Below are positions 1,115-52,323 of a DNA stretch of 64,000 nucleotides, in pieces. The position numbers and the translations under genes are program-made. The number at the start of each line of letters is the position of its first letter. Within the stretch, counting starts at the first letter, position 1. Origin of the DNA: Perkinsela sp. CCAP 1560/9 (lineage: Eukaryota > Protista > Euglenozoa: Kinetoplastea). The notes beneath the pieces are model-generated. The model worked only from the letters and a program-made list of their open reading frames with translations, searched no databases and was not told the DNA's origin. The stretch spans positions 1 through 64,000 of the forward strand of contig CBFFSA010000010.1 of NCBI GenBank assembly GCA_965644495.1, given 5' to 3'.

Positions 1115-1137
1115 GATCTTTATCGCTTTTTTTTTAA

Positions 1138-12015: not shown

Positions 12016-12410
12016 TGTGCATCATAAATATTATAAGAAAGAAAGAAAGCACTAAGCAAAACAATATCTTCATTCCCCTCTTCTATCTGATATTTGATAC
12101 GTTCAATTCTATGCACATTCAAAATTCATATGAATACTGTATGACCGGTCATAACATAACAAAATTAAATAATCCCACAACACTTCTGTCCTCTCCCAGC
12201 TTGCGAACGGGTGACGCGGGGACCACCCATTCGCTCGTCCTACTTCCATTTACAACCCAATCGCACGTTGATGTATTTCAGCGGTGCCTACTCCGCCAAA
12301 ATAAATCATAAGGAAATTCCGTATCGCTCACCGTGCCCGTGCTTCTCGATATTCACTGCTACATTTTTTTTTCTTTTTGGTATCGTATCTTCAAATTCAA
12401 AGTAAGTCGA

Positions 12411-22782: not shown

Positions 22783-23931
22783 GTGAAGAATATTCTGGAA
22801 ATATATTTATTAAGGGGCATAAAAAATCAATTTCAAGAAGAGGGAAACGAAACATACGGAAATCAAACGGAAACCACAACCGGCGCCGGCACTACCAGTC
22901 ATGTCCGAAGTACTCAGTACAAGCAACCTTCCACGAGCAACAGGGCTGTTACAAGGATAGTAACAAGATCAAGAGCAAAGAGCTTACTGGAGATCGAAGA
23001 CCTCTTCCTCGACCGCGTGGAAGGCAACAGAGAAACAAGAGCCGCGATTCCTACAGTCGACGTTCAACAAATGATCGTTCTAGGCCAGGATCGTCTATTA
23101 GAAGAGAAATCCAACTCGCGCTGGAATCACCTTTCCAGCGTGTACAAACAGTATACAGTTTGGAAGGAAAATCTCGGAAACGACGTTCCAAGCGAAGATT
23201 GGTGTATAATATGCTTCTTGGAGTCGAAAATGAGACTAATCAATCCGCAAACTCAACGGGGTACCATCAGCATCCAAACCGCACATACGTATGCAAAGAG
23301 TCTGATACAAATCATATTCCGATCTGGGGGTCAATTGCAAAAGTCGACTGTAACAGCCTATATGCGATCCCTTCAGCGTCAAGGGGCTCAAATACCGGAG
23401 CATCAGGCGCCCCCGGCTACACGCGAACAAGTATTGGAGGCGTGCGAATGGCTGCTTCCGGACGAAGCCGCGGGCCTGACCTTGGCGTGGAAGACATGCA
23501 GCAGAATAGACGATGTCAAACATCTGAGGAAATTAGATTTACAAGTGGTAGATCTCGAGCGGAGAATACTGGGAGTAACGTTTCCGACTCACAAAGGGGA
23601 TCCCTTCAGAGTAGGGACTGCTATTCCAATGACTTGCAACTTGACGGAGTGGAAAATCTTCATGGACCAATTGGACAAGCTGAAGCCAGAAGACAAGTTC
23701 ACGACTTTAACGACGCTGAGAGCCAATGCCGTGCTGAAGCGGGTGAAAGCAGAGTTGTCGGCACATTCTGTAAAAAGAGGGGCTCTAGTATCACTCCTCA
23801 GAGAGGGAGTTCCACTGTCGGTAATACAGCTGTTGGCCAAGCACAAAGATCTGGAGACATTGTGGATATATCTCCCTCGACTGGAAGTGGCCTTGTCCCT
23901 AGGGCTACAGGACGCGACAAAATTACTGTGA
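22783..23931 (+). CDS. Tyrosine recombinase
   Basis: WKTCSR, HSVKR, AKH, WIY; start uncertain. Confidence 0.85.
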   Translation: MKNILEIYLLRGIKNQFQEEGNETYGNQTETTTGAGTTSHVRSTQYKQPSTSNRAVTRIVTRSRAKSLLEIEDLFLDRVEGNRETRAAIPTVDVQQMIVLGQDRLLEEKSNSRWNHLSSVYKQYTVWKENLGNDVPSEDWCIICFLESKMRLINPQTQRGTISIQTAHTYAKSLIQIIFRSGGQLQKSTVTAYMRSLQRQGAQIPEHQAPPATREQVLEACEWLLPDEAAGLTLAWKTCSRIDDVKHLRKLDLQVVDLERRILGVTFPTHKGDPFRVGTAIPMTCNLTEWKIFMDQLDKLKPEDKFTTLTTLRANAVLKRVKAELSAHSVKRGALVSLLREGVPLSVIQLLAKHKDLETLWIYLPRLEVALSLGLQDATKLL

Positions 23932-25685
23932 ACCCAGAAAACACCAAAGGACATGACAAGAAAACTAATTCAGCTGTTTACATACTAAAACGTCAATTAC
24001 AAGGTAGGTTCCCCTTGCACATCGGTAAGATCACGCTAGACAGCGATAACATTATAGGCGAACCGAATCCCGAACCTATCTACGTGCATAATTCAACGGA
24101 CATTGCTAACATTGCAACGAAGAAAATTGAAGACACAAACAATCAGTCTATGTCTCACGGGCAGCTCACCCGACCACCGAGCGTGCGAGCGTACAAAAAT
24201 CAGGGAATAATAGCTCCTATCACAACCACAAGACTGTCATATTCTATACTGAACAATATGAATGACGATGGCAGTCTAGACGTTTTACATCTACTACAGA
24301 ACGTCAACGCCTTTCACGCGCACATGCTGCGTGCACCTAAAGGCAATCGACCAGTATCTCGATTTATGAGACATCATTTACCAGACTTATTACGCATGGG
24401 GGTTGTAGAGAAGACCGAAGGACCGATAGTAGTACATCGTACCTTTACAGTTCCGAAGAAAGACTCCACACTTCGTCTAATCTGCGATTGTAGGAAACTC
24501 AACCGAGTTTTCGAATGCCCCCCCGCAATGCACCTACCATCCATACATAACGTGATTGAAAATCTGCTAGATTCGGAATGGATGGCTCACGCGGACGCAC
24601 GGAGTTACTTTTACCAATTTTCCCTCACTCCCGAGATCCGATCCTACTTTGGAGCGGTTTTAGGTCACGCTAGAGGAGAAACATGCAGTATTCAATTTTC
24701 TTCCATGCCCATGGGATGGTCATGGGCCCCGGCTATTGCACAGCGAGTTTCAAATTGCATTGTCCGGGACATTGGATTGGCCTGGGTAGACAATTTTCTT
24801 TTGTTCGGAAAATCCAAGTCAGAAGTAGAAAACCATGCAAAAGAATTTCGCGCCCGAGTCCACGCAGTTCAACTAGAAGTAGATGATCTCACCATGAAGC
24901 CACTACAGGAAGCGTGCGTACTTGGTATTGAATTTGATCTAAAAAATAAGAAGTACTGCATGTCAGAAAAGTGGACTGAAAAGGCGTATTCAAGATACAA
25001 TGACATAATCGGGAATGGGACGTGGACAGCTGTGGAACTGTATACGCTTTCTGGTTTACTAATGTGGAGGGCAACGGTTATGAAAATCCCACTATGCACT
25101 TTTGCACACCTTCTTCAAACACTAGGAAAAGTTGCCAGAAAAGTGCACGACGAAAAGTCTTGGGAGATCTCCTTCTCTCCGACCGACCACCTGTTAGGCG
25201 AACTGACTGATGCATTTTCCGCACTCAAGCGAAATGTTTGGTTAAAAAAGATAGGTCATACACCCAAAGAAGAAAAGGTGGAAGTTTGGACTGATGCCAG
25301 TTCAATCGTATGGGCTATTCTGTTGTTCAATCAAGGCATTCCCGAAACTGCAAAACAAGGCATGACAAAGCCCGGAGCCCATATATTCTACTCAGAGCTG
25401 AGTGCGGCTCTTGGTGGAATTATGGCAGCAGTCAGAAAAGGACATCGGGACATTCTATTGAACGTCGACAACGCGCCTGTAGCCATGGCCCTCCAGAGGC
25501 GTGCAAGCACTAACTTCACTGCCAATAGGTGGATGCAGTACATCCCATCAAACACTAACCTGAAAGTAAAGTGGGTACCTACCAACGCCCAAATAGCAGA
25601 TCCCTTCACGAGAAAATCCAGCGCTGAAGACTTGACACCACTGCCCTCCATCGGTACTTATATTGAGAGCCTACGGCGCCCGTAG
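23160..25685 (+). CDS. RT-RNase H
   Basis: VPKKDSTLRLICDCR, DARSYFYQ, MPMGWSWAP, WVDN, WTDAS, VDNA, QIADPFTR; start uncertain. Confidence 0.9.
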   Translation: MEGKSRKRRSKRRLVYNMLLGVENETNQSANSTGYHQHPNRTYVCKESDTNHIPIWGSIAKVDCNSLYAIPSASRGSNTGASGAPGYTRTSIGGVRMAASGRSRGPDLGVEDMQQNRRCQTSEEIRFTSGRSRAENTGSNVSDSQRGSLQSRDCYSNDLQLDGVENLHGPIGQAEARRQVHDFNDAESQCRAEAGESRVVGTFCKKRGSSITPQRGSSTVGNTAVGQAQRSGDIVDISPSTGSGLVPRATGRDKITVNPENTKGHDKKTNSAVYILKRQLQGRFPLHIGKITLDSDNIIGEPNPEPIYVHNSTDIANIATKKIEDTNNQSMSHGQLTRPPSVRAYKNQGIIAPITTTRLSYSILNNMNDDGSLDVLHLLQNVNAFHAHMLRAPKGNRPVSRFMRHHLPDLLRMGVVEKTEGPIVVHRTFTVPKKDSTLRLICDCRKLNRVFECPPAMHLPSIHNVIENLLDSEWMAHADARSYFYQFSLTPEIRSYFGAVLGHARGETCSIQFSSMPMGWSWAPAIAQRVSNCIVRDIGLAWVDNFLLFGKSKSEVENHAKEFRARVHAVQLEVDDLTMKPLQEACVLGIEFDLKNKKYCMSEKWTEKAYSRYNDIIGNGTWTAVELYTLSGLLMWRATVMKIPLCTFAHLLQTLGKVARKVHDEKSWEISFSPTDHLLGELTDAFSALKRNVWLKKIGHTPKEEKVEVWTDASSIVWAILLFNQGIPETAKQGMTKPGAHIFYSELSAALGGIMAAVRKGHRDILLNVDNAPVAMALQRRASTNFTANRWMQYIPSNTNLKVKWVPTNAQIADPFTRKSSAEDLTPLPSIGTYIESLRRP

Positions 25686-28760: not shown

Positions 28761-29026
28761 GATGCAATCAAGCGGAAACGGGATACGTATGTGACATCCG
28801 GAAAAATTCCCGACTTCGCATTTCAGTGCATCCCAGTGCTGTCCTGCGGCTCTCTTCATCAAAATACGAGATCTCTGTTGCATGTCCTATCCGACGCGAC
28901 TCTCTTAAATTGTCGAGCAACTGAAATGGAGTTCAAGCTCCTACTTCAGGAACTGAATGGGACGGAAGTGTACGCCCAGTTGCGGAACCACTTATCCCCG
29001 GAAGGCAGCAGTAGGTACAGCATTTG

Positions 29027-29638
29027 TTGTTGTTGTTTAACCCGTTTGGCCATGACTGGCTATGGGTTCAGAGTACACCCTAGTTATTTAGTGCTCGTGT
29101 GAAACGGCACCGGGTATTACCGTACTCCGTGGGTGGTACGCTGTCAGTCGCGCGCAGACTTTCCCAGTGGGATGCCGCACTCGCAGATAGACAAGCAATA
29201 CCTGTCAGGTTGCGTGGTCTGACTTGTCATCCGTGACTTCAATGCCCGATGGATTCGCATCCTGGGGCAAAGAAGTAGTGGAACAGTCGTTATATTCTGT
29301 TCCACCACCAGGGATGACTCACGCTAGGGTGTGTGGAGCTTGCGAGGCTCTCTCACCAGCGGGGCTCACAATGGAGCTCGACCAGTGCCCTTCACAATTT
29401 AACAGCATCTGTGTGGGCTCGTTCGGTTCATCCTTCCTGCGAAATACCGCACGAACTCTTACACTTGGTCTTTCACCTTGAGCAACAAGTAACTTTTCTC
29501 TCACAACCGTACATAGTTGATTCAAAGCCTGTGCAGGCAGCGGCTCGGTAGGCGCGAGCTCGTCTGCACCGGGTGACACACTCCGTAAATTCCGTAAAGA
29601 ACGCGTCGATGAAGTCATAGCAACTTTCCTTACGCGAA
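29027..29638 (-). mobile_element. Chimeric insertion: YR gag 5' fragment fused to a (CAA)n-tailed structured element, 15-bp TSD
   Basis: taggtacagcatttg at 29012-29026 and 29639-29653; ~29400-29620 is homologous to gag 2; 29027-29400 is the reverse complement of 32403-32779. Confidence 0.85.
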
Positions 29639-29942
29639 TAGGTACAGCATTTGAGCCAAACGTATCAACATAGTTTCGTTTGTTCAATGCCAATATGTAT
29701 TATTATATACATAATATCTATAGATACCCATATAGGAAAAAGCTTATAAAGTCCACCCCCCTTAACAAAAGAAAGGTCAAGAAAACCTCCTTCTATGACA
29801 CCCTGGATAGTTTAAAAAAAAACGAGAAGGTCTCCAAGGATAGGGGTGAAGGGGCACATGGGGAATACAAGTATATTTCAAGTATATTTCATTGTTGACT
29901 TGTTGACTTTTTGTTTTATATCCCCTTTATTCTTACTTTCCC

Positions 29943-30400
29943 ATGGGAGTGGTCACCCGCTCTAAGGCGAAGGAATCGGGAGTATCTCCCGAAATTTTGC
30001 CTCTCCCCTCCACCCGGCGAAAGAAGAAAGCAACCGAGGTGCGATCTCCGCCGCCTCCGCCGCCAACATCAGAGAAATCACCGCAACCTGAACCATCCTC
30101 CTCTGCACTACGCTCGCAACCATCGCCCGGCCTGCGGCCTTCATCGCCTTCACTGCATTGCGCATCCACACCTTATCGGTCGAGAATACAAACTCCTACA
30201 GTGCCACTTGCCAAAAGAACGTGCGCTGTCGCAGCTGATGCTATAAGAACGGCATCAAGCGCCATGTCCGGTGCAGCATTGAATTCTGTAGACGTGCAAA
30301 TTCCGGAAACAGGAGGGGAGCCCGGTCGATCTCTCGGGTCTCCGCCATTTGACGATGGAATAGCCGCTGCATCTGGAGATACGGAGGATCACACAGCACA
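29943..30400 (+). pseudogene. 5' end of an RT-RLE ORF (MGVVTRSKAKE)
   Basis: Homologous to the starts at 8888 (-) and 28030. Confidence 0.65.
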
Positions 30401-30619
30401 CCTTGTTGAATTTCCCCCATGCACCCCCATCAATTTCCCCCATGCACCCCTTCACCCCTGGGGAAATTAAGCCCCCCTTCCGCCGCCCACTTCACCCCCT
30501 AGCGCCGCCCCCTTCGCCGTCCCCTCCACCCTGCTGCGTCGCCCTTCCCGCGACCTGTTTCGCCCCCCCTCTTGGGGAGGGAGCTTGAGCTACCCCATGC
30601 GTCGCCGCCGCCGCGCTCC

Positions 30620-31394
30620 CCGCCGTGGTTTGTTCAAGGAGGCTGGTTTTGACCCCTCCACTGAATATGTTTTTAACGGCGTCTTCTATAATCACGTAAC
30701 CCATAAGGTCAACCTGGGGCCTAGGGTTATACGGAAAATGTCACGAGATCGGTTTCGTAATATTACGTACTCTCAATTGGAGACGGCGGTGGGGCTCCTC
30801 CTCTATGCAGCAGCGGTCTTGGGTCATATTATTCCAGACTATCATTTCCCCTTAAAGATTGTTAGACGACGTATCAATGAGTTAAACCGATGCCCCGAAC
30901 TCGCACATCAACCGGTTCCTCTTCCGACAGCCACCCGATCGATTCTCGCGAATTGGCGTGATATCATTTTGGTAAATGAGCCTATATCACCACCTCCGCA
31001 TCCTGACGTTGTCCCGCATAAACACCGACTGTACACAGATGCGTCAGCTAAAGGATGGGGCGCGGTTCTTTACCGGGACGACGGACAAGTGATTATTGTT
31101 GGCGATAAATGGCAACCTGAGTTCAAATACGAAGTGAATCACGCTGAGGCGATGGCCGTTCGACTTGCGTTTGAAAAACTGACACACCACTTTCAAAAAG
31201 GAACCTGTGTTGATTAGTTTATTGACAACACCTCTTGCCAAGCAGCATTCAACCGCAAGATCGCGAAATCCGACAGTATTGCCGGAGAGCTCAAGCGTGT
31301 GTTGAAGACAAATCAGAACCTTGGCGTATGTATCATGGCACGTTATGTGAGATCTGCCGAAAACCCAGCGGACCCTATCAGCCGCACCGGATAA
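30620..31394 (+). pseudogene. YR-element RT thumb/RNase H fragment with a nonsense codon at 31215
   Basis: Close paralogue of the C-terminus of 2751-5672. Confidence 0.9.
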
Positions 31395-31632: not shown

Positions 31633-32365
31633 TTCGCGGAGTTGGTGGACGGGATGCCCGTTCGTAAGTTTGAGGAGTTGTTGACTGGGTTTCTGTGATT
31701 GTTTTTATTATATTGGCCAGGTACCTTGATAATTCGTCAGATAGATATAGCTTATTGGAAACTAAAAACAGTCGGGATGATTGGACTGAAACTTTCATTG
31801 AAGCGATATATTACTAGGAAAATTGGTTTTAACATGGTTTACTTTCATTATGATGCAGGGGAGAGAAGACGTTGATTTCTAGAAGTATACGTTTAGAAAT
31901 TTAGGATGATTGACATAATGGCCCTTCGGGGCACATAATATTTATATTATGATTTGTTTTTACAGATTGTGGCCCCGAAAGGGGCACCCGTTGTTAGATG
32001 TAATGAGATTTATAATTTAGTAGTACTCGGGATGAAGTAATATATATTGTTTTTGTGTATAGCGACACTCCTTCTTTTACCCTTTTCAAATTGCGCCCAC
32101 CCACCAACCCCCAACCATTTCGCGGAGTTGGTGGACGGGATGCCCGTTCGTAAGTTTGAGGAGTTGTTGACTGGGTTTCTGTGATTGTTTTTATTATATT
32201 GGCCAGGTACCTTGATAATTCGTCAGATAGATATAGTTTATTGGAAACAAAAAATGGTCGGGATGATTGGACTGAAACTTTCATTGAAGCGATATATTAC
32301 TAGGAAAATTGGTTTTAACATGGTTTACTTTCATTATGATGCAGGGGAGAGAAGACGTTGATTTC
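31633..32365 (+). repeat. 247-bp direct repeats (31633-31879 and 32119-32365), likely split terminal repeats of the YR element
   Basis: Near-identical copies downstream of the RNaseH stop. Confidence 0.85.
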
Positions 32366-32402
32366 GCTAAGAAACTAGGGTAGTCTCCATATGCAAAAAT
32401 TT

Positions 32403-32779
32403 AAATTGTGAAGGGCACTGGTCGAGCTCCATTGTGAGCCCCGCTGGTGAGAGAGCCTCGCAAGCTCCACACACCCTAGCGTGAGTCATCCCTGGTGGTG
32501 GAACAGAATATAACGACTGTTCCACTACTTCTTTGCCCCAGGATGCGAATCCATCGGGCATTGAAGTCACGGATGACAAGCCAGACCACGCAACCTGACA
32601 GGTATTGCTTGTCTATCTGCGAGTGCGGCATCCCACTGGGAAAGTCTGCGCGCGACTGACAGCGTACCACCCACGGAGTACGGTAATACCCGGTGCCGTT
32701 TCACACGAGCACTAAATAACTAGGGTGTACTCTGAACCCATAGCCAGTCATGGCCAAACGGGTTAAACAACAACAACAA
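32403..32779 (+). mobile_element. Structured non-coding element with (CAA)n tail
   Basis: Near-identical inverted copy at 29027-29400; bulged hairpin at 32689-32725; distant relative at 42864-43125. Confidence 0.75.
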
Positions 32780-35700
32780 GAACCTTATCTGTCGCAGGCG
32801 CAATCAGCAGTACCGCCATCGCTATCGTCCCCTCCGGCGACGAAGTCCCCTGCAGCAGATTCCTCGTCGGCCGAAAACGCAATAGAGCTTAGGTTCCCCA
32901 GTCTACTCCCGCTGCCGACCGGAAAAGATGATACAGAAAGAAATTTTCGCATGTCATTCAGTGAGTTGAAAAAGCAGTTGGACGCACGCGCAGAGGAAGA
33001 AAAGAAAACAAAAGAGAAAGCAGCTGAAACGTCACGTAGGCAGTGCGAAGACTCAGTGACCACGGCAATCCCCTCTACCCCTGTACCTTGTTGCCTAAAA
33101 GTTTACGTTATGAAATTAGGCGAGGGCTCTCATTTACGTTAATACCATAAATTGGCCTCCCTTTTCGCCCCGGTGCGCCGCCCTCGCCAACACCCCCATC
33201 GCCACGCGCTTTGCATGGGTCGCCCGGTATCAAGATACCAAGACACTAAACAACTAGGGCATGACACCTCATTCTCCCGGAGGAGGCAAGTCGGGTGTCT
33301 ACATGCTGCGGTTGAGCCTAGGCTCTCGCACTGTAGATTTACTCCCCGCGTGGAGCACCCGCACCGCTACTTACGCGGAAAGTGAGGAGGCCACATCTCT
33401 TCGGAGACAAACGGCCCGGACCCAACAACAACAACAACGGCAATCCCCTCACGCAAACCTCGCATAAAAGTGATCATTGGAAAACAGCGACAAGAAAATC
33501 ACACAACGATAAGCTCAAGTAATGAAGTTCCCCACTCTGAACCATCTTCGCGTCTTCAAACACTCGGTAAGGTTGCTGGAGTGGTCGGAAAGACTGTGGA
33601 ATGGGCTGCTGACACTGCACGGTGTTCCTACAGCCGAGGAGCGTGAGACAAGGGAACGCCAAATTGCAGAAACCGCTCGAGGAAAAGAAAGAAGAACGAT
33701 ATCAAAGTTAGATTGCCTCCCGATCACTACGATAAATACAGAATCTTCAGCGGAACAAACGTTAGGGATGCAGGACGTCAATACCGAGTCTCAGGCAAGC
33801 GTCGTTTGGCCAGGCACTACGACGACTGAGTCGATCACTGCGACGAATGATGAAACTTCAGCCGAACAGCCGACGCAGGACGCAGATGTCGAATGTCAGA
33901 CATACGCCGACTGTTTAACTCCTGAGGACACCCCATTGAGCACGGGAAGGGTTGACGGGTCTACGACACTGCACGAGGTAGTTGACGAAAACAATATCAC
34001 GATGCCGAACTTTGAACTTCCTGCTGAAACAGAGTCTGTCATAGAAGTTGCCAAGGAGGCCGAGATGATAGAGAAGTTGAATAAGTCGATAAACCCAACG
34101 GAGCAGTTTCCACTGGCACCGGATACCATCTGGGATTCATCAAAAACGGCGAAACAAGGGGACTCGTGCTTGATGGCATGGTGCTTCAGCGATTCCTCGC
34201 AGATGAATATATCGAAAGGTGTGGTTAAGTCAGTTAAGAAGCGTTCCGGAATCGGACGGATGTCTCTCCAGTACGAAGGTATAGAAGGGTACAAATGCGG
34301 CGAGCAATTTCGTGGGTTCATTCCTCCAAACTCTAATGTGAGAGTTTATTCAATACAATGGCTAAATCGAAAGGATTCAAAAAGCAGCATTGATGTGGAC
34401 GCTAAAGGAATTCCAAGTAATCAAGGATTTTCTCATACGGAAGCAGACTTGGATTTCGATCCAATGCCAACCATGCGGACTGTCAGTGCAGAGTTTGTGC
34501 CCTGTGTTGTCTCTATCTATCGTGACATAATGCGGGATTACGCAGATTCTTCTTACGACCAACGAAATCAAATCTGGCACAGAACCATGTCGGCAATGAA
34601 ACATTCGTTAGCTACAGTGCGCCATCTCATTGGAAAAAAGCGTCGTCGCCGCCCAATTCAAACTCAGGAGACGAACGCAGGAAACAGTGAAGTGGAGAAA
34701 AAGGCTAAAGATCTGAGAGCAGGCAAAAAAGCGACACGACTGGTTTTGGAAGGAGCGATTAAGAAAGCGACGCGCGTGTTAGATCAAGACATCACCGAAA
34801 CATCATTAGGGGATGAAGAAAAATTGTCTCAATTACAAAAACTACACCCATCTTTACCGATTTCTTTTGAGCTTCCCACCGACGCCCCGAAGGTAGCATG
34901 TATCCCGCCCCATGAACTCCGAGAAGCAGGAAAGAGACTCGCAAAAGGCGCCGCCCCAGGTCCATCCGGTACCACAGAGGCCATCATTCGTCTGCTCTTG
35001 GACGATGAGATCTGTTGCACGAGTCTAAGCCACATGATGTGCGATTTAATTAACGGAATGCTGTCCAAGGATGTAATGCGCAGACTGCGGAGAGCACGCT
35101 TAGTTGCACTCCCTAAAACAGCTCATGCCGTTCGACCGGTGGCAATGGGAGAAATTTTTCTCAAGTTGGCTGGACTAATCCTTCTTCTGCGTAACGAACA
35201 TAAATTTGAAAAGCTTTTCCTGCCGATGCAGCATGGGGTAATGAGTCGCGCTGGCTGCGAGACTATTGTTCACGAACTCAATCGACGATATATGGAAGGG
35301 TGTGCTATCCTCTCGTTGGATATGAAGAACGCTTTTAATAGCCCTTCACGCGGCGAGATTGCAAAAGCAATTTTTGCTTTGAGCGCCCTTCGGCCTTTTC
35401 AGCGACTATTTGTTGCCGAATATGGGACAGCGTCTGAACTCCTCTTTTACGGAAAGAACGGGGAACTGTTTTCAACAGTTGAAAGTTCGGCTGGAGTTCG
35501 CCAAGGGTCGCCGTTGTCGACTCTATACTTCTGCTCCTTTCTTCAGCCAATACTGGAGACAATTGCACAAGAATTTCCCATGCTACATATATACGCTTAT
35601 GTTGATGATATCAATATTGCGTCAACTGAGGAAGATCTTGTTGCAGCTGCCTATGTTCGCCTCAAAGAACTTCTTCTAAGCAAAGAAATCTGCCTTGCCC

Positions 35701-37106
35701 CTCAAAAGTGTGTATGGTTTAGCGGTCTGAACAATATTCGCCTACCCGAAAGTCTAGCGAATGAAGGCGTTCAGATAGCGGAGAAGGCAGTCAAAACATT
35801 AGGAGCCTACGTAGGGGAAGCAGCCCGAGTCAGTGAGCTGCTTCTTGCCAAGCTTGAAAAGCATCTAACGATTTTCGGCGGCTTTGTGACATGGGAGCAA
35901 ACAACGTTTCGCTTCTCCTCCTGTCGCGATGTGTTAATGTACGACATCGATACCATATAAGGGTGCATCGACCGGAAGAAACTTTTGAAATGGCAAAATC
36001 TTTTGACAAGCAAGTGCAAGAAGTTCTTACTGCATGGTTTGGATCGATGACACCAAAGCAAATTGCTTGGGCGCGTCTACCTGTGAAGAGCGGAGGATTG
36101 GGGTTAACGCCCACTGATCTCTTGCGAAAATCGGCGTATGAAGCATCAAGGCACAGTACTCTTGAACGACTTAATTCCTATTCAGTTCGAGCACCCAGTC
36201 TCACGTCTCCATCGCCGGTGGGAAATGAAGGTCAGATAACCCCTCCCCACGATGAATTTGTAACTGAAGCAAAGCTTAACAGAGCCATTAAAGAATCGTT
36301 GAGTAAGGACCCGAAAATTGCACCAGTGCTGAGAGCAGCAAGTGAAAAAGTGAACTCCGCGTGGCTTCATTCTACGGCAAAGTTAGTGCCTTCCAAATTC
36401 TTCACATTAGCTTTGATGCCGTCTTGGTCTAAGCCACCCCCGTATTCCCGAAAGTCTGCAATGCCCAGGATGCCGCACCCTTCTGGATTCTTCATCAGCC
36501 TTTTCGCACATAGCTGGATGCGTCCAGTGTTCCGGAAATAATACAACAATGAAACATAATAATCTGGTGCGTATTATCTATGAACTGTGCATGAAGGCGG
36601 GTGTGCCATGCGAAAGGGAACCTCGACAGTTTACTTCTTATAAATGCTCTACATGCGGGGAATCGTTCCCACAATGGCGAAAAAGTGATCATCAAAAAGT
36701 TTGTAGAAATGCGAGCCTCCATCGGTCAGGACCTGACATTGTAATACATTGGGCAACTGGGGAAATCTTTTATGACCTAACAATAATTCACGAGCTGGCG
36801 CCCACTAATGTACGGAAACGTAGCGGTACCTTGATGAGAGAGGCCATTACGCGCAAGCACAGCACATACGTGGCTTCCGGGATGATACCTCAAGAGCGTT
36901 TCGTATGCCTCCCAGTCCTCTCCGGTGGTGCTATGCATCACGGGCTCCGGCACTTGTTGCATACGTTGGCGGACTGCAGCGGACTTGATAGGGTCCGAAC
37001 ACTGAACGAATTTTCGCTGCGCCTGCAGGAGTTAAATGGGTCGATTGTATTCTCTCAGCTGAGAAATTATTTATCTAATGACGATTCACAAAACATGGGC
37101 CTCTAG
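32780..37106 (+). mobile_element. Near full-length CRE/SLACS-like non-LTR retrotransposon (frameshifted)
   Basis: ORFs 33522-35960 (DMKNAFN, GVRQGSPL, YVDD), 35891-36541 and 36549-37106 (SGPD..FYD RLE). Confidence 0.9.
33076..33436 (+). mobile_element. 361-bp SL-headed SINE-like element with 14-bp TSD
   Basis: TSD acggcaatcccctc at 33062-33075 and 33437-33450; SL remnant ctgtaccttgttg at 33081-33093; hairpin at 33222-33260; (CAA)n tail. Confidence 0.9.
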
Positions 37107-37250
37107 AATTTGACTTTAAAAACAAAAACCTTGGTAACATGTTTACAAATGAGAGAGTAGATACAAAAAAGAAGTGTATATAATATACTGTGAGAATGTT
37201 CATGTATATCATTATTCATTCCGTGTTCAAGTGACTATGATGATGATGAT

Positions 37251-37969
37251 TTGGGCCTTTTGACTCCGAAAAGTTATGGCCCCTCAACTCCCCAAACGGG
37301 CAGTCTGAATACGTCTTGCGACGTATCCGGAGAGACAGCCATAGCAAGCTATGGCTGACCTCCGCTTGGAGAGGAGTTAGTTTTCCAATATTATCCTCCA
37401 ATGAAGGAAGCCAATAATTAACAGCTCCAGGGTAGGAGGGGTTCGCTACTCCCCAGCGTGGTTTAACAAGTTAATCCACTACCCTGCCTAAATTTGAATT
37501 GTTGCGTGGATACTACCCTAGTTTTTTGACGTCTTGTTTTACTGACGCCGGGTAGCTCCACAACATGGGACAGTGAGACAAGGAAGGGGCCGGTGAGAGG
37601 GAGCGGGGCGGGGAGCGCAGTAAATAGCGCAGCGGAGGGAGAGAGCGATGTGGAGAACGGGAAGAGCGGCGGGAACGGCGGCGGGAAGGGTGGCGGGAAG
37701 GGCGGCGGGAAGGACGGCGGGATGCGCGGCGAGGAACCTGGCGGGGAGCGCGGCTGGGAGCGCGGCAGGCAAAGGGGTCATAATGGGGGGCGTCGAGGAG
37801 GGCAACCGGAAGGGCGACCCGGAGGACGGTGCGGGAGGGCGATTTCTTCTTTCGTCCAGGAGGGGTCTCCCCGCGGCGGGGAGAGCGGCGGGGGGGACAA
37901 TGGAAATAGCAGTGGGGGGGGACAAATCAACAAGGTACAGAACCCAACAAGGTACAGAAAACAACAAGG
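37251..37969 (-). mobile_element. SL-headed structured non-coding element
   Basis: In order on the minus strand: stacked SL relics 37969-37928, C-rich repeats, hairpin 37562-37506, junction motif 37488-37421, 130-bp module 37380-37251. Confidence 0.75.
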
Positions 37970-38253
37970 GGCGCAGTATTATTCCCTTCAATAGACCCAA
38001 TGACGGCCACAGGCAGCTTATGGGAAGAACCCTATGAAATAAACAAACCGGAAATTTTGGCGGTCGAGCGCGCCTTACATACGTTTGAGGCAAGTGACTA
38101 TACAGGGGGGTAAAACAGTAAGAGAGATCGATCTGAAGATTTTTGACGGGTGTGTTGAAGTAATTTATTTTATTTATTATAAAATGGATCTTGGGAATTT
38201 TTTTTTTTACATTTTAACAGGGTAATTCATCTTTACAAGGGCATAAAATCCGC

Positions 38254-38580
38254 TACCTTGTTGGTCCCTTGTCGACTTTTCTGCCCCACCCACCAGCCCA
38301 TCTGGTACCTTGTTCTTGTTTTGATTCTGTACCTTGTTGCTTGTTGTTGACTTTTGTTAAGACCTATCTACCCCATGTACCCCTTCCCCCCTTCACCCCC
38401 CTTTCACCGCGCCTTTCGCAGACTGCCGGCCGTGCTCCCCACCGCCCTCCCCGCCGTGTTCCCCGCCGTGCGCCCCGCCGTTCAGCCCGCCGTGCGCCCC
38501 GTCGTGCTCCCCGCAGTGCGCCCCGCCGTTCTCCCCGTCGTGCGCCCCGGCGTGCACCCTGACGCCGTACCCCCTTTGCC
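38254..38580 (+). mobile_element. 5' part of another SL-headed element
   Basis: SL relics at 38254-38263, 38305-38314 and 38325-38339, then (ccccgccgtg)-type repeats. Confidence 0.6.
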
Positions 38581-38630
38581 CGTATACCCCCTTTTTGTTT
38601 AATACCCCCTTTTTGTTTAATACCCCCTTT

Positions 38631-39847
38631 GGGTACGAGGACACTTCCGTGAGTACTCATCGAAACGCCCACGTGTCAAAACGAAAATCATCGAAACGAA
38701 AGAAACTCATCGAAGGTGATTTTAATTACTTTTGAGGTGGTAGCTGCATTTTCGACTCGGGAGCAAACTCAGCACAACCTGGACATACACGAACTGACGG
38801 AAGCAAAGTACGTGCAGCAGCTTCGGCCCCAACCAAGGGGCTAAAAATAAGTCTGTCATCCCAGGCACCAGGAGTTCGTAATTCCTCTGGAGTGCGAGGT
38901 AACTCTTCTTCTTCCTCTTGTTCTTGAGTGCGACGCATTTCGCTGTCTACGAAACGCACAAAACTATTCAAAAGAGCTTCGCGTGCACATGATGTATTGG
39001 GCCTTTTGACTCCGAAAAGTTATGGCCCCTCAACTCCCCAAACGGGCAGTCCGAATACGTCTTGCGACGTATCCGGAGAGCCAGCCATAGCAAGCTACGG
39101 TTGACCTCCGCTTGGAGAGGAGTTAGGTTACAGCTAGGGAGGTGAGGTGCGCTATACCCCTGCGCCTTAGGTAATGCAAATAAGGCGCCCCTTGACCAAA
39201 AAAAACCACTCTATCTTTTGAGGGTGGATAAAAAAAACACAAACACATTCCAAAGATTAGCCCGAATGGCACCCACCCTAGTTTCTTAGTACCTTGTTAT
39301 ATTCGGTACCGGGCGGTGCCACCCATTCTACGTTGCCAGAATGACATCCACCCTAATTATTTAGTGCCTCGTTTTACTGGCACCGGGTAGTGTCATCCAG
39401 GTCTCGAAGTATAGGAAAACAAATACGCAATCCTGCGGAAGTGCCAGACATAGGTTCTCAGTGCGCGACCCGCGCGCTGGAGCGCGCGGGTCGCCAAAAA
39501 ATATAATTCTGTCCCAGGGCTACGCTCACAGTTGGGCCTTGCTCGCAAACGGGGGCTTTTGCCTCCAGAAGTGGGCTTCGCTCAAAGTTGGGCCTTGCCT
39601 CCAGACACGTAAACTAGGTGTCGTAGTATAGGAAAACAAATACACAAACCTGCGGAAGTGGCAGACACAGATTCTCAGTGTCGCCGCTTTCTTATTTTCA
39701 TGTTCTCGATTTTTTTCTTTCCAAAGCAATTAAAATCACCTTCGATGAGAAGATTGACGTTTCGATGAGTCACCCTGTGACACGTAGGCACTTCGATGAG
39801 AAATCATCGAAGTGTCTCAAAAACTCACGGAAGTGCCCGTGGAGCGC
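38631..39847. mobile_element. ~1.2-kb element with imperfect long TIRs inside the 18-bp satellite
   Basis: ctcatcgaaggtgattttaatt (ends 38728) is inverted at 39729; cacttccgtgagt also inverted; satellite on both sides in the same orientation. Confidence 0.6.
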
Positions 39848-39994
39848 CCCCTTTTTGTTTAATACCCCCTTTTTGTTTAATACCCCCATTTTGTTTAATA
39901 CCCCCTTTTTGTTTAATACCCCCTTTTTGTTTAATACCCCCTTTTTATTAGTATACGATTTGAAATTTAGACGACTTTTATTATACGTGATGAG

Positions 39995-40225
39995 TGGTGG
40001 CCCTTCGGGGCACATAGTATGATTACTATGATCTTAATAATAAATTATCGGAGGGAATGTTTTATTTGATCTAGTTATTATTGAATTTTCTAGTTTGATC
40101 GGATTATATCAAATATTATTTCTTGTGTTATAGAGACATTCAATTTCAAACAGTTACAAAATCGTTCCCACCCACCAACCCCCAGCCATTTCGCGGGTTG
40201 GTGGGCAATGCCCATTCGTAAGTTA
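39995..40225 (+). repeat. YR-element terminal junction segment
   Basis: tggcccttcggggcacata...cccacccaccaacccccagccatttcgcgg.ttggtgg parallels 31919-32153. Confidence 0.7.
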
Positions 40226-40410
40226 CTTGAATTTGGAATAAGGATTATACTATAGTATGAAAGACGAATATGAGGGAAGGCGTATTAAGGAATAAGGGAT
40301 TTAGAGTAAGTGTATTTTGTGAATGTTGATTTTATTCAAGTTTCATGTGTTATTTACCTAATTTATTGATTCTATGTCGGGAAGGGAAAAGACGACGTGA
40401 ATTTCTGTAT

Positions 40411-41280
40411 AATGCCCCCTTTTTGTTTAATACCCCCTTTTTGTTTAATACCCCCTTTTTGTTTAATACCCCCTTTTTGTTTAATACCCCCTTTTTGTTT
40501 AATACCCCCTTTTTGTTTAATACCCCCTTTTTGTTTAATACCCCCCTTTTTTTTAATACCCCCCTTTTCTTTAATACCCCCTTTTTGTTTAATATCCCCT
40601 TTTTGTTTAATACCCCGTTTTTGTTTAATACCCCCTTTTTGTTTAATACCCCCTTTTTGTTTAATACCCCCTTTTTGTTTAATACCCCCCTTTTTGTTTA
40701 ATACCCCCTTTTTGTTTAATACCCCCTTTTTGTTTATACCCCCTTTTTGTTTATACCCCCTTTTTGTTTAATACCCCCTTTTTGTTTAATACCCCCTTTT
40801 TGTTTAATACCCCCTTTTTGTTTAATACCCCCTTTTTGTTTAATACCCCCTTTTTGTTTAATACCCCCTTTTTGTTTAATACCCCCCTTTTTTTTAATAC
40901 CCCGCTTTTCTTTAATACCCCCTTTTTTTTAATACCCCCTTTTTGTTTAATACCCCCTTTTTGTTTAATACCCCCTTTTTGTTTAATACCCCCTTTTTGT
41001 TTAATACCCCCTTTTGTTTATATCCCCTTTTTGTTTAATACCCCCTTTTTGTTTAATACCCCCTTTTTGTTTAATACCCCCTTTTTGTTTAATACCCCCT
41101 TTTTGTTTAATACCCCCTTTTTGTTTAATACCCCCTTTTTGTTTAATACCCCCTTTTTGTTTAATACCCCCTTTTTGATTAATACCCCCTTTTTGATTAA
41201 TACCCCCTTTTTGATTAATACACCCTTTTTGTTTAATACCCCCTTTTCGTTTAATACCTCCTTTTGTTTAATACCCCCTT
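40411..41280. repeat. 18-bp minisatellite (AATACCCCCTTTTTGTTT)n
   Basis: Direct inspection; shorter arrays at 38583-38630 and 39848-39945. Confidence 0.95.
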
Positions 41281-41629
41281 TCCCCTCCCCATCTCCCGGA
41301 GAAGCGAAGGGACTAGATCCTTTTTTCTAGGCAAGACCCTTCGTTTCTCCACGCTAGGAGCGCTCCTGGACTAACAATCCGGAGCAGTGGAGTTTTTAGC
41401 GAGTGAGCTACCAGAGTCTCTGACGCAATCCGAGATTCAACGAAACTCTGGTATGCAAGTCTCGCACTACCCTGTAATGGGGTGTCTCCCCTGAGGTGCG
41501 TGGGTGGAAACACCCGTTCATTTGCCACTGGAAGGTGGCCAGCTCACTCGACCAAGAAAAGCCTGCCGGTTGGACACCGGGTGGCGGTCGAGGCGGTTGA
41601 GGCAAAGATTTTCTCCATGTAGGAAAAAA

Positions 41630-42740
41630 AAACCCCGACGCCGTTCCCCCCGTGCTCCCTGCTGCCCTCCCCGCTGTCCAACCGCCTCACTCCCACCTCG
41701 CTCCCCGCCTTGATCTCCGCCGCGCCCATGGTGTGGATCTACCCGGCGTCAACACAACAAGACGTCAAGAAACTAGGCTAGTATCCACAAAAAATTTAAG
41801 GCAGGGTCGTGGATTAACTTGTTAAACCAAGCTGGGGAGTAGCGAACCCCTCCTACCCTGGAGCTGTAATCATTGGCTTCCTTTTATAGGAGGATAAGTC
41901 GGATGTGTGCCTTCTATGGTTGAGGTACTCTCATGTCGGCACAGATGCTTCGAGCATCGGCATCCGCACTAGGGAGCCATATCTCCTCGGAGACAAACTG
42001 CTCTGTGAACCAACCAACCAACCGCTTTTTGTTAAACACCCCCTTTTTGTTGTACCTGTACCTTGTTCCCTCACTCCCTGCTTCGCTCTCTGCCGAGCTC
42101 CCCGCCCCATGTACCCCTTCACCCCCGTTCGCCGTGCCCTTCGCCGTCTTTCCGCCGTGCTCCCCGCCGTGCCCCCCGCCGCGCTCTCCCACCGCTCTCC
42201 CGCCGCTCTCCCGCCACTCTCCCGCCGCGCTCCCGCCGCGCTCCCGCCGCTCTCCCACCGCTCTCCCGCCGCGCTCCCGCCGCTCTCCCGCCGCTCTCCC
42301 GCCGCTCTCCCGCCACTCTCCCGCCGCGCTCCCGCCGCTCTCCCGCCGCTCTCCCGCTGCTCTCCCGCCGCTCTCCCGCCGCGCTCCTGCCGCGCTCCCG
42401 CCGCGCTGCCCGCCTCACTCTCCGCTTCGCTCTCCGCCGCGCTCCCCACCTCTTTCTCCATCGCCATAGTGTGGACCTACACGGCGTCAACACAACAAGA
42501 CGTCAAGAAACTAGGGTGGCATCCGCACAAAAAAATTAAGGCAGGGTCGTGGATTAACTTGTTAAACCACGCTGGGGAGTAGCGAACCCCTCCTACCCTG
42601 GAGCTGTAATTATTGGCTTATAGGGGGATAAGTCAGATGTGTGCCTTCTATGGTTGAGGTACTCTCATGTCGGCACAGATGCTTCGAGCATCGGCATCCG
42701 CACAGCGCACCTAGGCTGAAACTAGGGAGCCATATCTCTC
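41630..42740 (+). mobile_element. Two tandem copies of the structured non-coding element
   Basis: Hairpin + junction motif at 41733-41867 and 42469-42607; SL relic at 42056-42067; (ccgccgctctc)n between. Confidence 0.75.
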
Positions 42741-43367
42741 TGTCCCAACCCAACCCAACCCAACCCACCAGCCCATAAACATACCCCCTCTATGCCCCCC
42801 TTCACCCCAGAGGAAACTCCCTTGTTTCCCCCACCGTGCACCAGCTCCTGATAAGATAAGATATCCCGTTTGGCCGACTAGGGCTATGGGATCGTAGCAG
42901 GAATCTCCGTTACAGAGATACCTCTACGTCGGCCTGAGTGTCTTTTTAAGTGGGGCTGAGCATCCTCTCCGTTTCCGGAAGAGTACAGGCGTCAGAATCT
43001 CACCACCGAGGACTCATCAAGGGACGTTGAGTGAGGACGCACTCGTTCACTAGAGATCCCGGTGGGACGACCAGTGCCCTGAACGGGCCTAGTTATTTAG
43101 CGCTTTGTTTTGCTAGCGCCGGCCTTAGCTCGGGAGGCTGGGATCGCTAAGTCCCATCGTCCGGTGTTAATCGGACGCCCCGACCTTATAATCAATAGAT
43201 ATGCCCATCATCACATTGTCCGATACATGTACTTAAGCGTCGTAACTTACAGACGCTTCCGGCTCTACAGTAGCTAAATAAAACGACGCCGTTGATTCGG
43301 AAGACCATAGTGATGAGGGTGAAGAGTAGTGTGATGCTTCTGGCTCACCTGGAACTGATTTTGGCCA

Positions 43368-44612
43368 GGGGGGCGTTCGATGATTACTCACCGAACGGGC
43401 AGCCGTTCGATGAGTACTCACTGAACGGGCAGCCCCTTCGGTGAGTAACGTCCCGTTCGATGAAACTCACGGAATGGGCTGTCCGTTCCGTGAGTAATTC
43501 ATTGAATCGACGGTCAACCACAAAAAGAACGTTTAATGCTTTTCCAGATGCGACAGTTGCGTCCTAGTTTATGTGTATGGAGGTAAAGCCCAACTGTGAG
43601 CGTAGCCCACTTCTGGAGGCAAAAGCCCCCGTTTGCGAGCAAGGCCCAACTTTGAGCGTAGCCCTGGGACATAATTATATTTTTTGGCGACCCGCGCGCT
43701 CCAGCGCGCGGGTCGCGCACTGAGAACCTATGTCTGGCACTTCCGCAGGATTGTGAACTCGTTTTCCTATGCTGCGACACCTAGTTTACCTGTCTAGAGG
43801 CAAGGCCCAACTGTGAGCTGAAAAGGGGGGTACGAATACAGCTATCTGCCGTAAAGATTCAGTTTCTGTACAGCCTCCTCAAGTCGATCGAATTCCATGA
43901 CGCGCGTTTAATGCACGTTTTTCCCCCAAAATGTTGCAGCAAATTATTTTTCTCAAGCAACAGGGCGTCCCGTTCGATGAGTACTCTTCGAACGGGTCGT
44001 TCTGCAAATTGATGATGATTAATAGGCATTATATCTCCGAGGAGATGTTACCTCCCTAGAACAAGCCCCCCCTTATCGCTTGCTAGGAGCTGTGCCACGC
44101 AGCACGCAAGTCAAATCCGAAGATTTGACCAGATCGAGCGCGAGCAGCCAGCTTATCTTTTTTTAACCCCTTTTATATACTACAAGAAAATATTCTTTAT
44201 TAAAAAACACTTCTTTTGAAGTGAAAAAACACTCCAAAGATTATGCTGAATGACACCCGCCCTAGTTCCTTAGTACCTTGTTATAACCGGTACCGGGCGG
44301 TGTCATTCTCACGCTGCGATGTCTGGGTGACCGTTACCCTAGTTAATTTGTGCCTTGTTTTGCTGGCACCGGGTAGTGTCATCCTCGGGACCTTGATCGT
44401 ACCCACCCTAGGTATGTAGCGTCTTGTTGTGCGACGCCGGGTGAGTTAGCTAGGGAAGCTGGGGTCGCTACGCCCCATCATCCGACAAAAGTCGAATGCC
44501 CTGACTGATTCTGCCCTGACTGGTTCTGCAAATTACTCACCGAAGGGGCTGCCCGTTCAGTGAGTACTCATCGAACGGGCTGCCCGTTCGGTGAGTACTC
44601 ATCGAACGCCCC
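43368..44612. mobile_element. ~1.25-kb non-autonomous TIR element
   Basis: ~80-bp near-perfect inverted repeats at 43368-43448 and 44532-44612; ~43550-43750 is an inverted homologue of ~39430-39620. Confidence 0.75.
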
Positions 44613-44751
44613 CCCCCCTCCCCCTGATTTTTTTATCCCCTCGAGCCTGTAACGTATGTCGGGAAGTAAAAACGGTTCCTCGTCGCTCGTGAAGGAATCC
44701 TCAGAAAAATCAGAGGGGCTCCAATCTTCATCTGTTTCACACTCACACACA

Positions 44752-44920
44752 GAAGAGGAAGAAGAAGAAGAAGAAGAAGAAGAAGAAGAAGAAGAAGAAG
44801 AAGAAGAAGAAGAAGAAGAAGAAGAAGAAGAAGAAGAAGAAGAAGAAGAAGAAGAAGAAAGGAGAAGAAGAGGAAGAAGAAGAAGAAGAAGAGGAGGAGG
44901 AGGAGGAGGAGGAGGAAGAA
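44752..44920. repeat. (GAA)n/(GGA)n microsatellite
   Basis: Direct inspection. Confidence 0.95.
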
Positions 44921-45138
44921 GAGTCAAAAGAGCTGTACTCGGAAGCCTCATCGGACGAGTCACTTCTCATCGTTGAAATCAGTTTCTTGAAGTTAAGAAA
45001 AATCGCAGGTCTTTCATTTCAAAGATAATCACTCAACAAAATATTTTTTCATAACAGTGAGATATTTTTTAACGTTGCTGTATTATTATTTTTTCATGAA
45101 TTTTTGAAGCCTTCTTTACCCATATCTTTCTTGCCTTA

Positions 45139-46536
45139 ATGAAAAAGTTACCCCAAAATCGACTGTTACAAGAGCAAGATTCCGCAGTCTATGACATTCT
45201 TGAAAAAGAAAAAGCGCGGCAGTACTTCGGTTTGGAGATGATTGCGTCCGAGAACTTTACTTCATCAGCAGTGCTAGAATGTTTAGGTTCACATCTAACT
45301 AATAAGTATGCTGAAGGGGAGATCGGAGCTAGATATTACGGAGGAACACAATTTATTGACCAAATCGAAGGACTGTGCCAATCACGTGCGTTGGAGGCAT
45401 TTCATTTGGATGCGAAGGAGTGGGGGGTCAATGTTCAACCTTATTCTGGATCACCGGCCAATTTCGCCGTGTACACTGGCCTTTTACAACCACATGACCG
45501 TATCATGGGTATGGATCTTCCTGCGGGGGGACATCTTACACATGGCTACTATACAGCTAAAAAGCGAATCAGTGCGACCTCAATATTTTTTGAATCGCTT
45601 CCGTATTCCCTTGATTCTGATGGAATCATTGACTACGAAGAATTGAAGAAAATTGCTGAAATATACCTTCCAAAAGTAATTATTTGCGGTGGATCCGCTT
45701 ACCCACGCGATATTGACTACGGACGATTTCGGGAAATTGCGGACAAAACAGAATCTCTGTTAATGTGTGATATGGCGCATGTCTCAGGTCTGGTGGCCAG
45801 CGGATTACTGCGCTCTCCTTTTACACATTGTGACATAGTGACTACAACAACTCATAAAACCCTTCGTGGACCAAGAGCTGGCATGATATTTTACCGTAAG
45901 CTCGGGCGCGATGGTAACTCAACTAATTTTGCTCAGCGGATCAATATGGCAGTCTTTCCTGGCCTTCAAGGCGGTCCCCATCAAAATGTTATCGCTGCCA
46001 TTGCAGTACAGTTGAAAGAGGTAGCCACAGAAGATTTTAAGGAGTACAGTCGCCAAATCATTCGCAACGCTCAGGAGCTGTCCAAAGCTTTGATAGATAA
46101 AGGTTATACGTTGATTACCGGTGGGACTGACAATCACTTACTACTTTGGGATTTACGCCCACTAGGCCTGACAGGTTCGAAATATGAGAAGATACTAGAA
46201 AAATCATCGATCAGCATAAATAAAAACACTGTTGTGGGTGATAAAAGTGCTGCTTCTCCAGGTGGTGTTCGCATTGGGACACCAGCGCTTACTTCTCGAG
46301 GAATGAAAGAAGCGGAAATGAGACTTATTGCCGTCTTTATGGAACGCGCCGTGAAGATTGCGTTGGACATTCAGCTCCGTGCTGGTAAACGATTGGTTGA
46401 TTTTGTAGCCAAGCTATCCGAGAATGCTGAGATAGAGAGTCTTCGAAATGATGTGGAAGGGTTTGCAGGTCAGTATCCAATCCCAGGTTTCAGTATTGAC
46501 GGGATGAAATATCGTGATCATGTACCAGAGGTATGA
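45139..46536 (+). CDS. SHMT: Serine hydroxymethyltransferase, eukaryotic cytosolic type, intronless
   Basis: [43 protein letters not shown] (PLP lysine), FPGLQGGP. Confidence 0.98.
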
Positions 46537-50473: not shown

Positions 50474-52035
<1,562 letters not shown>

Positions 52036-52323
52036 ATACAGTCAGCAAAAAAACCGTTCGAATGTTTCGGTTTTTTTTCTTTTTGTATAGAGCTATTGAT
52101 TAAATATCACCGTTGCGCTGGTAATGTGTGCTAGTAGTGTAGGCATGAGTGTCACCTAATAGTACCCGTAGATAGTTCACCTCAGTTCGTTCTACCAAAG
52201 AAATAAGAATGAATATAAAAAAGTTCAGCATTCGAAAGGTTTTTTTGCTACCTATTATAGAGAAAATCTTGTCCCAAAAAATAGATGAAACGTAATCGCC
52301 CAAGAGAGATTATGCCCGTAAAA

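Follow-up and report, generated by a model that had tools for sequence, protein, structure and literature searches.

A short non-coding insertion in Perkinsela sp. CCAP 1560/9 joins a spliced-leader relic to a LINE-like 3' end and is probably a SINE-like retroposon

The window analysed here, a 64-kb stretch of the genome of the kinetoplastid Perkinsela sp. CCAP 1560/9 (contig CBFFSA010000010.1, positions 1 to 64,000), is dominated by retroelements, with five reverse transcriptase (RT) open reading frames (ORFs) and a tyrosine-recombinase ORF overlapping one of them. Beside one of the RT ORFs lies a non-coding insert of 361 bp (33076-33436), with stops in all frames, between two exact copies of a 14-bp target-site duplication (TSD). 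This insert, hereafter the type element, carries a relic of the spliced leader (SL) close to its 5' end, and its 3' half resembles the 3' untranslated region (3'UTR) of a long interspersed nuclear element (LINE). We compared it with further loci (L-numbers), and the comparison covered about 174 kb of the same genome. Its parts and the flanking TSD copies are the following:

33062-33075 (+): left TSD, ACGGCAATCCCCTC, an exact 14-mer with its second copy at 33437-33450
33076-33080 (+): five extra bases, TACCC, between the left TSD and the SL relic, read directly
33081-33093 (+): SL relic, CTGTACCTTGTTG, the last 13 nt of the SL exon, matching the SL 3' end of the transcript L002 and of full genomic SLs
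33094-33154 (+): AT-rich non-coding leader with stops in every frame, present only in the type copy
33155-33214, about (+): C-rich tract directly 5' of hairpin A
33215-33268 (+): hairpin A, a CCCGG ... AACTAGGG module (18-copy alignment), 83% identical to L004 8838-8884 in a LINE 3'UTR
33312-33387 (+): middle 3'UTR-derived module with small conserved stems, 82% identical to L004 8976-9080
33388-33417 (+): 3'-terminal bulged hairpin C (alignment A1), scoring 52.7 bits with the covariance model R1
33423-33438 (+): (CAA)n microsatellite tail (TRF: 5.3 copies, 100% matches)
33437-33450 (+): right TSD, identical to 33062-33075

The TSD, the SL remnant, the C-rich tract, the bulged hairpin and the (CAA)n tail had all been described at these positions in an earlier reading made from the letters alone (the sequence-only reading), and we could confirm each of them. 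The probability that a 14-mer recurs by chance at the end of the tail within 3.4 kb is about 1e-4. Excision of 33076-33450 restores a 134-codon ORF whose end overlaps the start of the neighbouring RT ORF at 33522, and thus the type element sits in ORF1 of another LINE. The five extra bases in front of the SL relic may be either a truncated SL piece (TACC) or untemplated bases, and partial SL pieces resembling this case are present at L004 7405-7455. For the leader, neither blastn nor tblastx gave a match in the ~174 kb, and tblastx of the type head against all loci revealed no coding origin. The C-rich tract is weakly similar to those at 42412-42516 and 30482-30528, which likewise lie 5' of hairpin A.

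The 13-mer of the relic has seven exact copies in the window, and with up to 2 mismatches we counted 12 matches whereas 1.2 were expected by chance. The metatranscriptome contig L002 encodes a protein identical to the serine hydroxymethyltransferase (SHMT) of the window, whose gene (45139-46536) shows ~70% identity to the SHMTs of Perkinsela and two free-living prokinetoplastids, PhF-6 and PhM-4, and ~61% to trypanosomatid SHMTs, values that place the organism among the deep-branching kinetoplastids. This transcript begins with GTTTCTGTACCTTGTTG and then, from 45099 onwards, follows the genomic 5'UTR; upstream of that position, genome and transcript differ. Therefore, the 13-mer is the authentic 3' end of the organism's SL. 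The trans-splice acceptor of the SHMT mRNA is TG and not AG (window 45090-45100 compared to L002 1-20), which fits the relaxed, non-AG acceptor usage that has been reported for Perkinsela (PMC5601477).

Full-length SLs are also found in the window:

6621-6656 (-): full-length genomic SL heading an autonomous element with ORF1 (5546-6583) and an RT/RNase H ORF (2751-5672)
1080-1115 (-): second full-length genomic SL, preceded by an A-run and heading an ORF-bearing element

Near-complete SL copies, about a dozen of them, stand at the heads of autonomous elements belonging to several classes. Since each of them is followed by a different 5'UTR and ORF, these copies are not SL RNA genes, and SL heads are general in this genome rather than special to the family of short elements. 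The near-complete copies begin ~2-3 nt short of the expected SL 5' end; the missing nucleotides coincide with the cap-4 modification site of kinetoplastid SLs, to which we presume their loss is linked.

These observations bear on whether the type element is a dispersed fragment of an SL RNA gene with an insertion into it, or an SL-gene association like that of SLACS, CRE1, CRE2 and CZAR, which also are kinetoplastid retroelements associated with SL sequence. Such elements are site-specific in SL RNA genes and have a restriction-like endonuclease (RLE), whereas in the present genome the SL belongs to the RNA that was transposed, and the copies stand at diverse sites. The relic of the type element represents the exon's 3' end and is enclosed by the TSD, and what comes after it is element sequence with no common intron; the dozen or so full copies each run into a different sequence, and the type flanks are a LINE ORF and not an SL gene. 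We thus regard an SL-gene origin as hardly credible. A SLACS-type site-specific element was likewise rejected, the flanks being a LINE ORF1 restored on excision and the SL relic lying inside the TSD.

Some further features were seen around full genomic SLs. First, the full SL of the RT/RNase H element has the 12-mer TGACATTTCCTC on both sides (6621-6668, -), which is either a second copy of the 5'UTR start or a repeat resembling a TSD that encloses nothing but the SL. Second, poly(A) runs stand directly 5' of many full SLs (window 1116-1135, -; L003 15498, -; L004 22275, -; L005 1826, -; L007 3700-3729 and 10690-10715), which suggests that retrocopies were joined head to tail or that they inserted into A-rich sites. 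Third, an exact 32-bp direct repeat (L003 3191-3222 and 10043-10074) surrounds a 6.8-kb SL-headed element with two RT ORFs, itself lodged in another RT ORF.

By aligning the copies of the two hairpins, we found covariation in both. Hairpin C consists of an outer 5-bp stem, an AYA bulge, an inner 4-bp stem with a UUCG loop in the type element, and a CAAAC-type bulge. In alignment A1 (8 copies), 95.8% of the cells are paired compared to 10-50% when the partners are slid; compensatory changes affect 7 of the 9 pairs, and U-G pairs occur. For hairpin A, alignment A2 (18 copies) has 86.6% of the cells paired compared to ~38% with slid partners, with compensatory changes at 11 pairs and many G-U pairs. 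Pair 16-38 is G-U in 11 of the 18 copies, which fixes the strand, so that the claim of the sequence-only reading that G-U pairs favour the strand of the motifs is borne out by both hairpins. The covariation between copies shows hairpins A and C to be conserved RNA structures. In Rfam, no family was found at gathering scores in the whole window or at E<=5 in 32000-45200, ribozymes included, despite hammerhead-like strings nearby.

The loop of hairpin A, AACAAGG, is conserved, is extended to AACAAGGTAC in five copies, and is complementary to the 3' end of the SL. This complementarity reaches at least 6 nt in 13 of the 18 copies, for example in window 39276-39313 (-) and 44260-44297 (-) and in L007 8571-8608.

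The model R1, built from hairpin C, was run against the window and the loci. In addition to the short elements, it matched LINE 3' ends in L004 (8239-9107), L005, L007, L008, L009 and L012, located 140-340 nt 3' of the ORF2 stop codon (~410 nt in L005, a weak match of 13 bits). Every matched LINE 3' end continues into a simple-repeat tail, and L006 has a variant of the hairpin. The LINE 3'UTRs with hairpin C also hold one to three copies of hairpin A, which overlaps the stop codon in L007 (LINE ORF 6001-8529). The 3' half of the type element is 82-83% identical to the LINE 3'UTR at L004 8838-9080 and aligns with the 3'UTRs of L008 and L009, the tail of L008 being likewise (CAA)n; the middle module (33312-33387) can be aligned with the same two 3'UTRs and contains compensatory pairs. 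Judging from these alignments, the last 215 nt of the type element, with hairpin A, hairpin C and the microsatellite tail, appear to be derived from the 3'UTR of an RTE-like LINE.

A search with the C-terminal domain of ORF2 as a separate piece, which carries a GH(V/I)ARM motif, led to the full-length proteins P0131 and P0135 of the same assembly. P0135 could be aligned over 99% of its length to ~1000-residue Exo_endo_phos + RVT_1 proteins, and it keeps the GDFNA and SDH endonuclease motifs, with a weak Pfam match to the apurinic/apyrimidinic endonuclease (APE); its best matches among solved structures are LINE-1 ORF2p entries (8c8j, 8sxt and others). These similarities show the presumed partner to be an APE-type LINE with RTE-like relatives, and its membership of the RTE clade, based on unnamed relatives and on the size of the ORF, is provisional. 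In two loci from other samples (L010 and L011), ORF2 C-termini of a related kind occur without the hairpins and without the SL, and these loci were left aside.

The hairpin motifs are thus 3'UTR modules of an APE-type, RTE-like LINE family and not a private architecture. Of the proposal that these are retroposed, structured, non-coding and SL-headed elements of their own design, retroposition, the TSD and a genuine SL stood, while the motifs turned out to be LINE modules. The sequence-only reading had held that a match to the UTR of an autonomous element would speak against it; the motifs do match one, and a partnership of a short interspersed nuclear element (SINE) with a LINE looks just the same. 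Together with the short, non-coding and TSD-bounded body, the match to an autonomous LINE 3'UTR leads to a SINE-like, LINE-tailed reading.

The same LINE data weigh on the suggestion that CRE-like enzymes, with RT and RLE, mobilise these elements. An R2/L1-like RT ORF (33522-35960, with a CCHC-like zinc finger 3' of it) adjoins the type element, and LINEs of this kind are abundant in the loci. However, the ORF1 of this R2/CRE-like LINE is what the insert interrupts, which makes it the insertion target. Moreover, R1 found no hairpin C at the 3' ends of its family in the window, L003 and L005, and it is behind the ORF2 of another LINE, one of APE type, that the hairpins and tails are found. The TSDs of the other copies (Z, c44, w29 and two in L004, listed below) are 11-16 bp long, as APE-type LINEs give, and fit APE-type target-primed reverse transcription. 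Mobilisation by the CRE/R2-like enzymes encoded nearby is therefore very improbable.

Beyond the type element, we found the following related copies and fragments in the window and in L004:

37239-38090 (-): copy Z, in which ~120 nt precede the tandem SL relics (37925-37969); a C-rich 12-mer array, hairpin A, further modules and hairpin C lead on to a (CAT)n tail
37228-37238 and 38091-38101: TSD of copy Z, 11 bp
42056-42768 (+): copy Y, with 12 of the 13 SL relic bases, head motif CCCCATGTACCCCTTCACCCC and a C-rich 11-mer array of ~26 units; hairpin A and further modules follow, hairpin C is degraded and the tail is (CCCAA)n
41633-42025, 5' limit approximate (+): copy X, 5'-truncated and without SL, 89% identical to Y; from its C-rich tract it runs through hairpin A, further modules and hairpin C to a (CCAA)n tail
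38251-38640 (+): partial copy with several SL relics, head motif and C-rich 12-mer array, running into an 18-mer satellite, without 3' modules
30403-30627 (+): SL relic CCTTGTTG and C-rich head, 96% identical to L004 7467-7660, within a DIRS-like coding region
44011-44522 (-): copy c44, without SL and with a distinct 120-nt head, beyond which it is 95% identical to the ORF2 end and 3'UTR of the L007 LINE; 12-bp TSD at 43999-44010 and 44523-44534
29027-29638 (-): chimera w29, without SL start; its first 238 nt are the 5' end of an ORF-bearing RNA (98.7% identity to L006 8777-8543), and the 379-nt 3' module joined to them holds hairpin A, hairpin C and (CAA)n; 15-bp repeat at 29012-29026 and 29639-29653
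32366-32783 (+): copy of the 3' module of w29, 99.7% identical to w29 and 98.8% to L004 7802-8220, with a (CAA)n end
38990-39400, limits approximate (-): copy c39, in which hairpin A is present twice, with hairpin C and a short (CAT) tail
L004 7405-8222: order from SL relic to motifs present, TSD of 13 bp with one mismatch
L004 8239-9107: order from SL relic to motifs present, TSD of 16 bp with one mismatch

The recurrence of the order of parts, as claimed before, could be verified at 37969-37240 (-), 42056-42768 (+) and, partly, 38251-38640 (+), and we found it also at the two L004 positions; in all five elements having both, the SL relic shares its strand with the motifs, as had been claimed for the three complete cases. 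The order C-rich tract, hairpin A, modules, hairpin C is common to the type element and at least four other copies, although its similarity to the other window copies is at the level of motifs only. In four copies the SL relic is followed by the head motif CCCCATGYACCCCTTCACCCC and then by the C-rich repeat array, and this subset is a true family. Tails vary between (CAA)n, (CAT)n, (CCAA)n, (CCCAA)n and (TAAC)n, even among close copies, and seem to be made anew at each insertion. The tail unit differs, for example, between copies that are 89-95% identical (44011-44025, -, compared to L007 8850-8880; 42008-42023 compared to 42744-42767).

Some relics also record more than one round of copying. 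At L007 3730-3785, exactly the 16 nt that come after the internal CAG of the SL are repeated behind a full SL, and 16-17 nt units of this recycled kind are found also in copy Z (37925-37969, -) and at L004 8239-8262. Tandem relics cut at the internal AG of the SL mark repeated cycles in which a copy is transcribed, trans-spliced at its relic and retroposed. These recycled relics are seen in relatives, the type element having one relic plus the five extra bases.

Taking these observations together, we consider it likely that 33076-33436 is a SINE-like, non-autonomous non-LTR (long terminal repeat) retroposon, LINE-tailed and templated by a trans-spliced RNA of RNA polymerase II (Pol II). A genomic copy would be transcribed by Pol II read-through, and the transcript would be processed like an mRNA, with the SL trans-spliced onto its 5' end as the SL relics show. 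The RT of the RTE-like LINE, rather than that of another, would then bind hairpin C and the tail, the hairpin being its recognition signal, and prime at the nicked target, in line with the shared 3' ends, the TSDs and the tails; given stringent 3' recognition, it could copy the short element in trans. The cDNA ran into the SL, whose last 13 nt are fixed in the genome, and target-primed reverse transcription into ORF1 of an unrelated LINE would leave the 14-bp TSD. Template switching would add mosaics, as the chimeras suggest, and renewed transcription and splicing of SL-headed copies may form a regular life cycle.

For the type copy itself, the main rival is a one-off chimeric retrocopy, in which the RT left a LINE 3'UTR for an SL-capped cellular RNA unrelated to it and copied that RNA up to the 5' end, giving a mosaic dead on arrival. 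Mosaics are indeed frequent; three different heads share one 379-nt 3' module (99.5% identity), and the 5' end of an ORF-bearing RNA is one of these heads. An SL relic with a C-rich head stands at the internal junction of a DIRS-like element, and the partial, out-of-register SL pieces at L004 7405-7455 resemble template jumping. On the other hand, the order of parts shared with at least four copies, and the AG-cut tandem relics of related copies, whose formation takes two or more rounds of transcription, splicing and retroposition, speak against such an accident. We therefore hold a one-off chimera to be rather unlikely, though less so than the other alternatives.

Several observations weigh against the SINE-like interpretation, some of them in favour of the chimera. 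First, the type head is unique in the ~174 kb, so that the type copy could be a one-off. Second, c44 and w29, both TSD-bounded, start without SL, and Z has 120 nt before its relics; also, the SL/body junctions vary among copies, and template switching could give the same. Third, we recovered no full-length partner LINE of the subfamily of the type element, the closest 3'UTR being 82% identical, and among the related LINE copies none was similar enough at the nucleotide level to serve as an empty site. Fourth, in the JGI metagenome contigs neither the junction of SL and type head nor the hairpin of the 379-nt module found a match as an element transcript. Finally, single-sequence folding of the sense strand is no better than that of shuffled sequences (z = -0.95); this measure is uninformative, and the case for structure rests on the covariation.

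Other repeats and elements surround these copies. Two DIRS/VIPER-like elements are located at 22783-25685 (+), with a tyrosine-recombinase ORF (22783-23931) overlapping an RT + RNase H ORF (23160-25685), and at 29943-31217 (+), which is internally rearranged and has the SL relic and C-rich head (30403-30627) at the junction. An 18-bp satellite, TTTTTGTTTAATACCCCC, is present in 49 copies at 40402-41281 and again at 38584-38630 and 39847-39946, and copies X and Y are inserted in or beside it. Hairpin-forming repeats of 30-31 nt, with the unit start TACTCATCGAACGGG, occur in direct and inverted orientation (43374-43497, 44534-44608, 38640-38735 and 39720-39816); c44 is inserted into one of them, and they are possibly a foldback element or one like a miniature inverted-repeat transposable element. 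Simple repeats are found at 58623-59968 ((CCTCTTTCTT)135), 51568-52038 ((ATAG)118), 53657-54263 (a 25-mer x24) and 44751-44922 ((AGA)57). Elsewhere in the same genome, L009 holds fragments of Tc1/mariner-type DDE transposases (149-1069, 2036-2653 and 11903-12531).

SINEs with a LINE-derived 3' tail and stringent 3' recognition are known from UnaSINE1/UnaL2 and from the RTE/BovB-dependent SINEs. Like these, the type element is short, non-coding and TSD-flanked, and it has in common with its partner LINE a 3' end with a terminal stem-loop and a simple-repeat tail; its mobilisation would be in trans. Unlike classical SINEs, it has no Pol III head from a tRNA, 7SL or 5S RNA, and its 5' end is an SL relic, implying an mRNA-like Pol II template. 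ARAGORN found no tRNA in the window and Rfam gave no match for such a head; with an SL relic plus a unique leader in its place, the type element departs in this respect from a classical SINE.

Relic SLs at the 5' end are known from dinoflagellate retrogenes, in which AG-truncated tandem relics of the DinoSL stand for repeated splicing and retroposition (PMC5585692, PMC6050394, PMC12014239). The type element likewise has an SL relic at the 5' end of a retrocopy (13 nt, 5 nt inside the TSD), and its relatives have recycled relics. In contrast to the dinoflagellate case, the SL is that of a kinetoplastid, the carriers are transposable elements and non-coding derivatives instead of protein-coding genes, and the microsatellite tails are tied to a LINE 3' hairpin and are not poly(A).

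Among kinetoplastid elements, RIME (with ingi), NARTc (with L1Tc) and SIDER have the Pr77 5' signature, unspliced transcripts and a poly(A) end (PMC1874656, PMC3383444, PMC8190864). The type element resembles them as a kinetoplastid non-autonomous element that would depend on an APE-type LINE and has sequence in common with it; it differs from their descriptions in its SL relic 5' end, its (CAA)5 tail and a partner whose relatives are RTE-like and not named ingi/L1Tc. The poly(A) end of RIME/NARTc/SIDER is not shared, the type tail being (CAA)5 and those of its relatives (CAT)n, (CCAA)n, (CCCAA)n and (TAAC)n.

In Perkinsela sp., scattered fragments of SL RNA genes and introns, some beside retrotransposons, have been described, and an SL-bearing RNA of an L1Tc-like retrotransposon was amplified (PMC5601477, Supplementary Notes 1.2 and 1.3). 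Our data agree with this picture in the many SL-derived pieces, in the SL heads of retroelements and in a TG acceptor. The TSD-bounded elements with a spliced SL exon as 5' end, the recycled relic arrays and the LINE-tailed non-coding family go beyond it. In a literature search we did not find TSD-bounded, SL-exon-headed elements or a LINE-tailed non-coding family described in kinetoplastids, only these Perkinsela notes coming near; the SL-headed, LINE-tailed elements are thus partly foreshadowed by the scattered SL fragments.

A more speculative idea, to which we give little probability, is that the SL relic acts as a self-renewing 5' end that replaces a promoter: read-through RNA would be re-spliced at or near the relic, regenerating a capped full-length template. 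The loop of hairpin A might pair with the SL, either in cis, joining the ends of the RNA, or in trans with SL-capped RNAs, which would favour full copying or template switching. If true, this would be a trans-splicing-dependent class of SINE/LINE life cycle in a polycistronically transcribed genome.

In this deep-branching kinetoplastid, mature trans-spliced RNAs are templates of retrotransposition, and LINEs, DIRS-like elements, chimeras and short derivatives carry SL heads. As in dinoflagellates, the SL is a built-in marker by which retrocopies can be recognised, rounds of retroposition counted and trans-splice sites mapped from DNA. A probable RTE-like LINE family with conserved 3' hairpins, and its parasites, is thereby documented in kinetoplastids, where the catalogued ingi/L1Tc, CRE/SLACS and VIPER elements and their derivatives work differently. 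Our reading also offers a concrete explanation for the SL fragments scattered in the Perkinsela genome.

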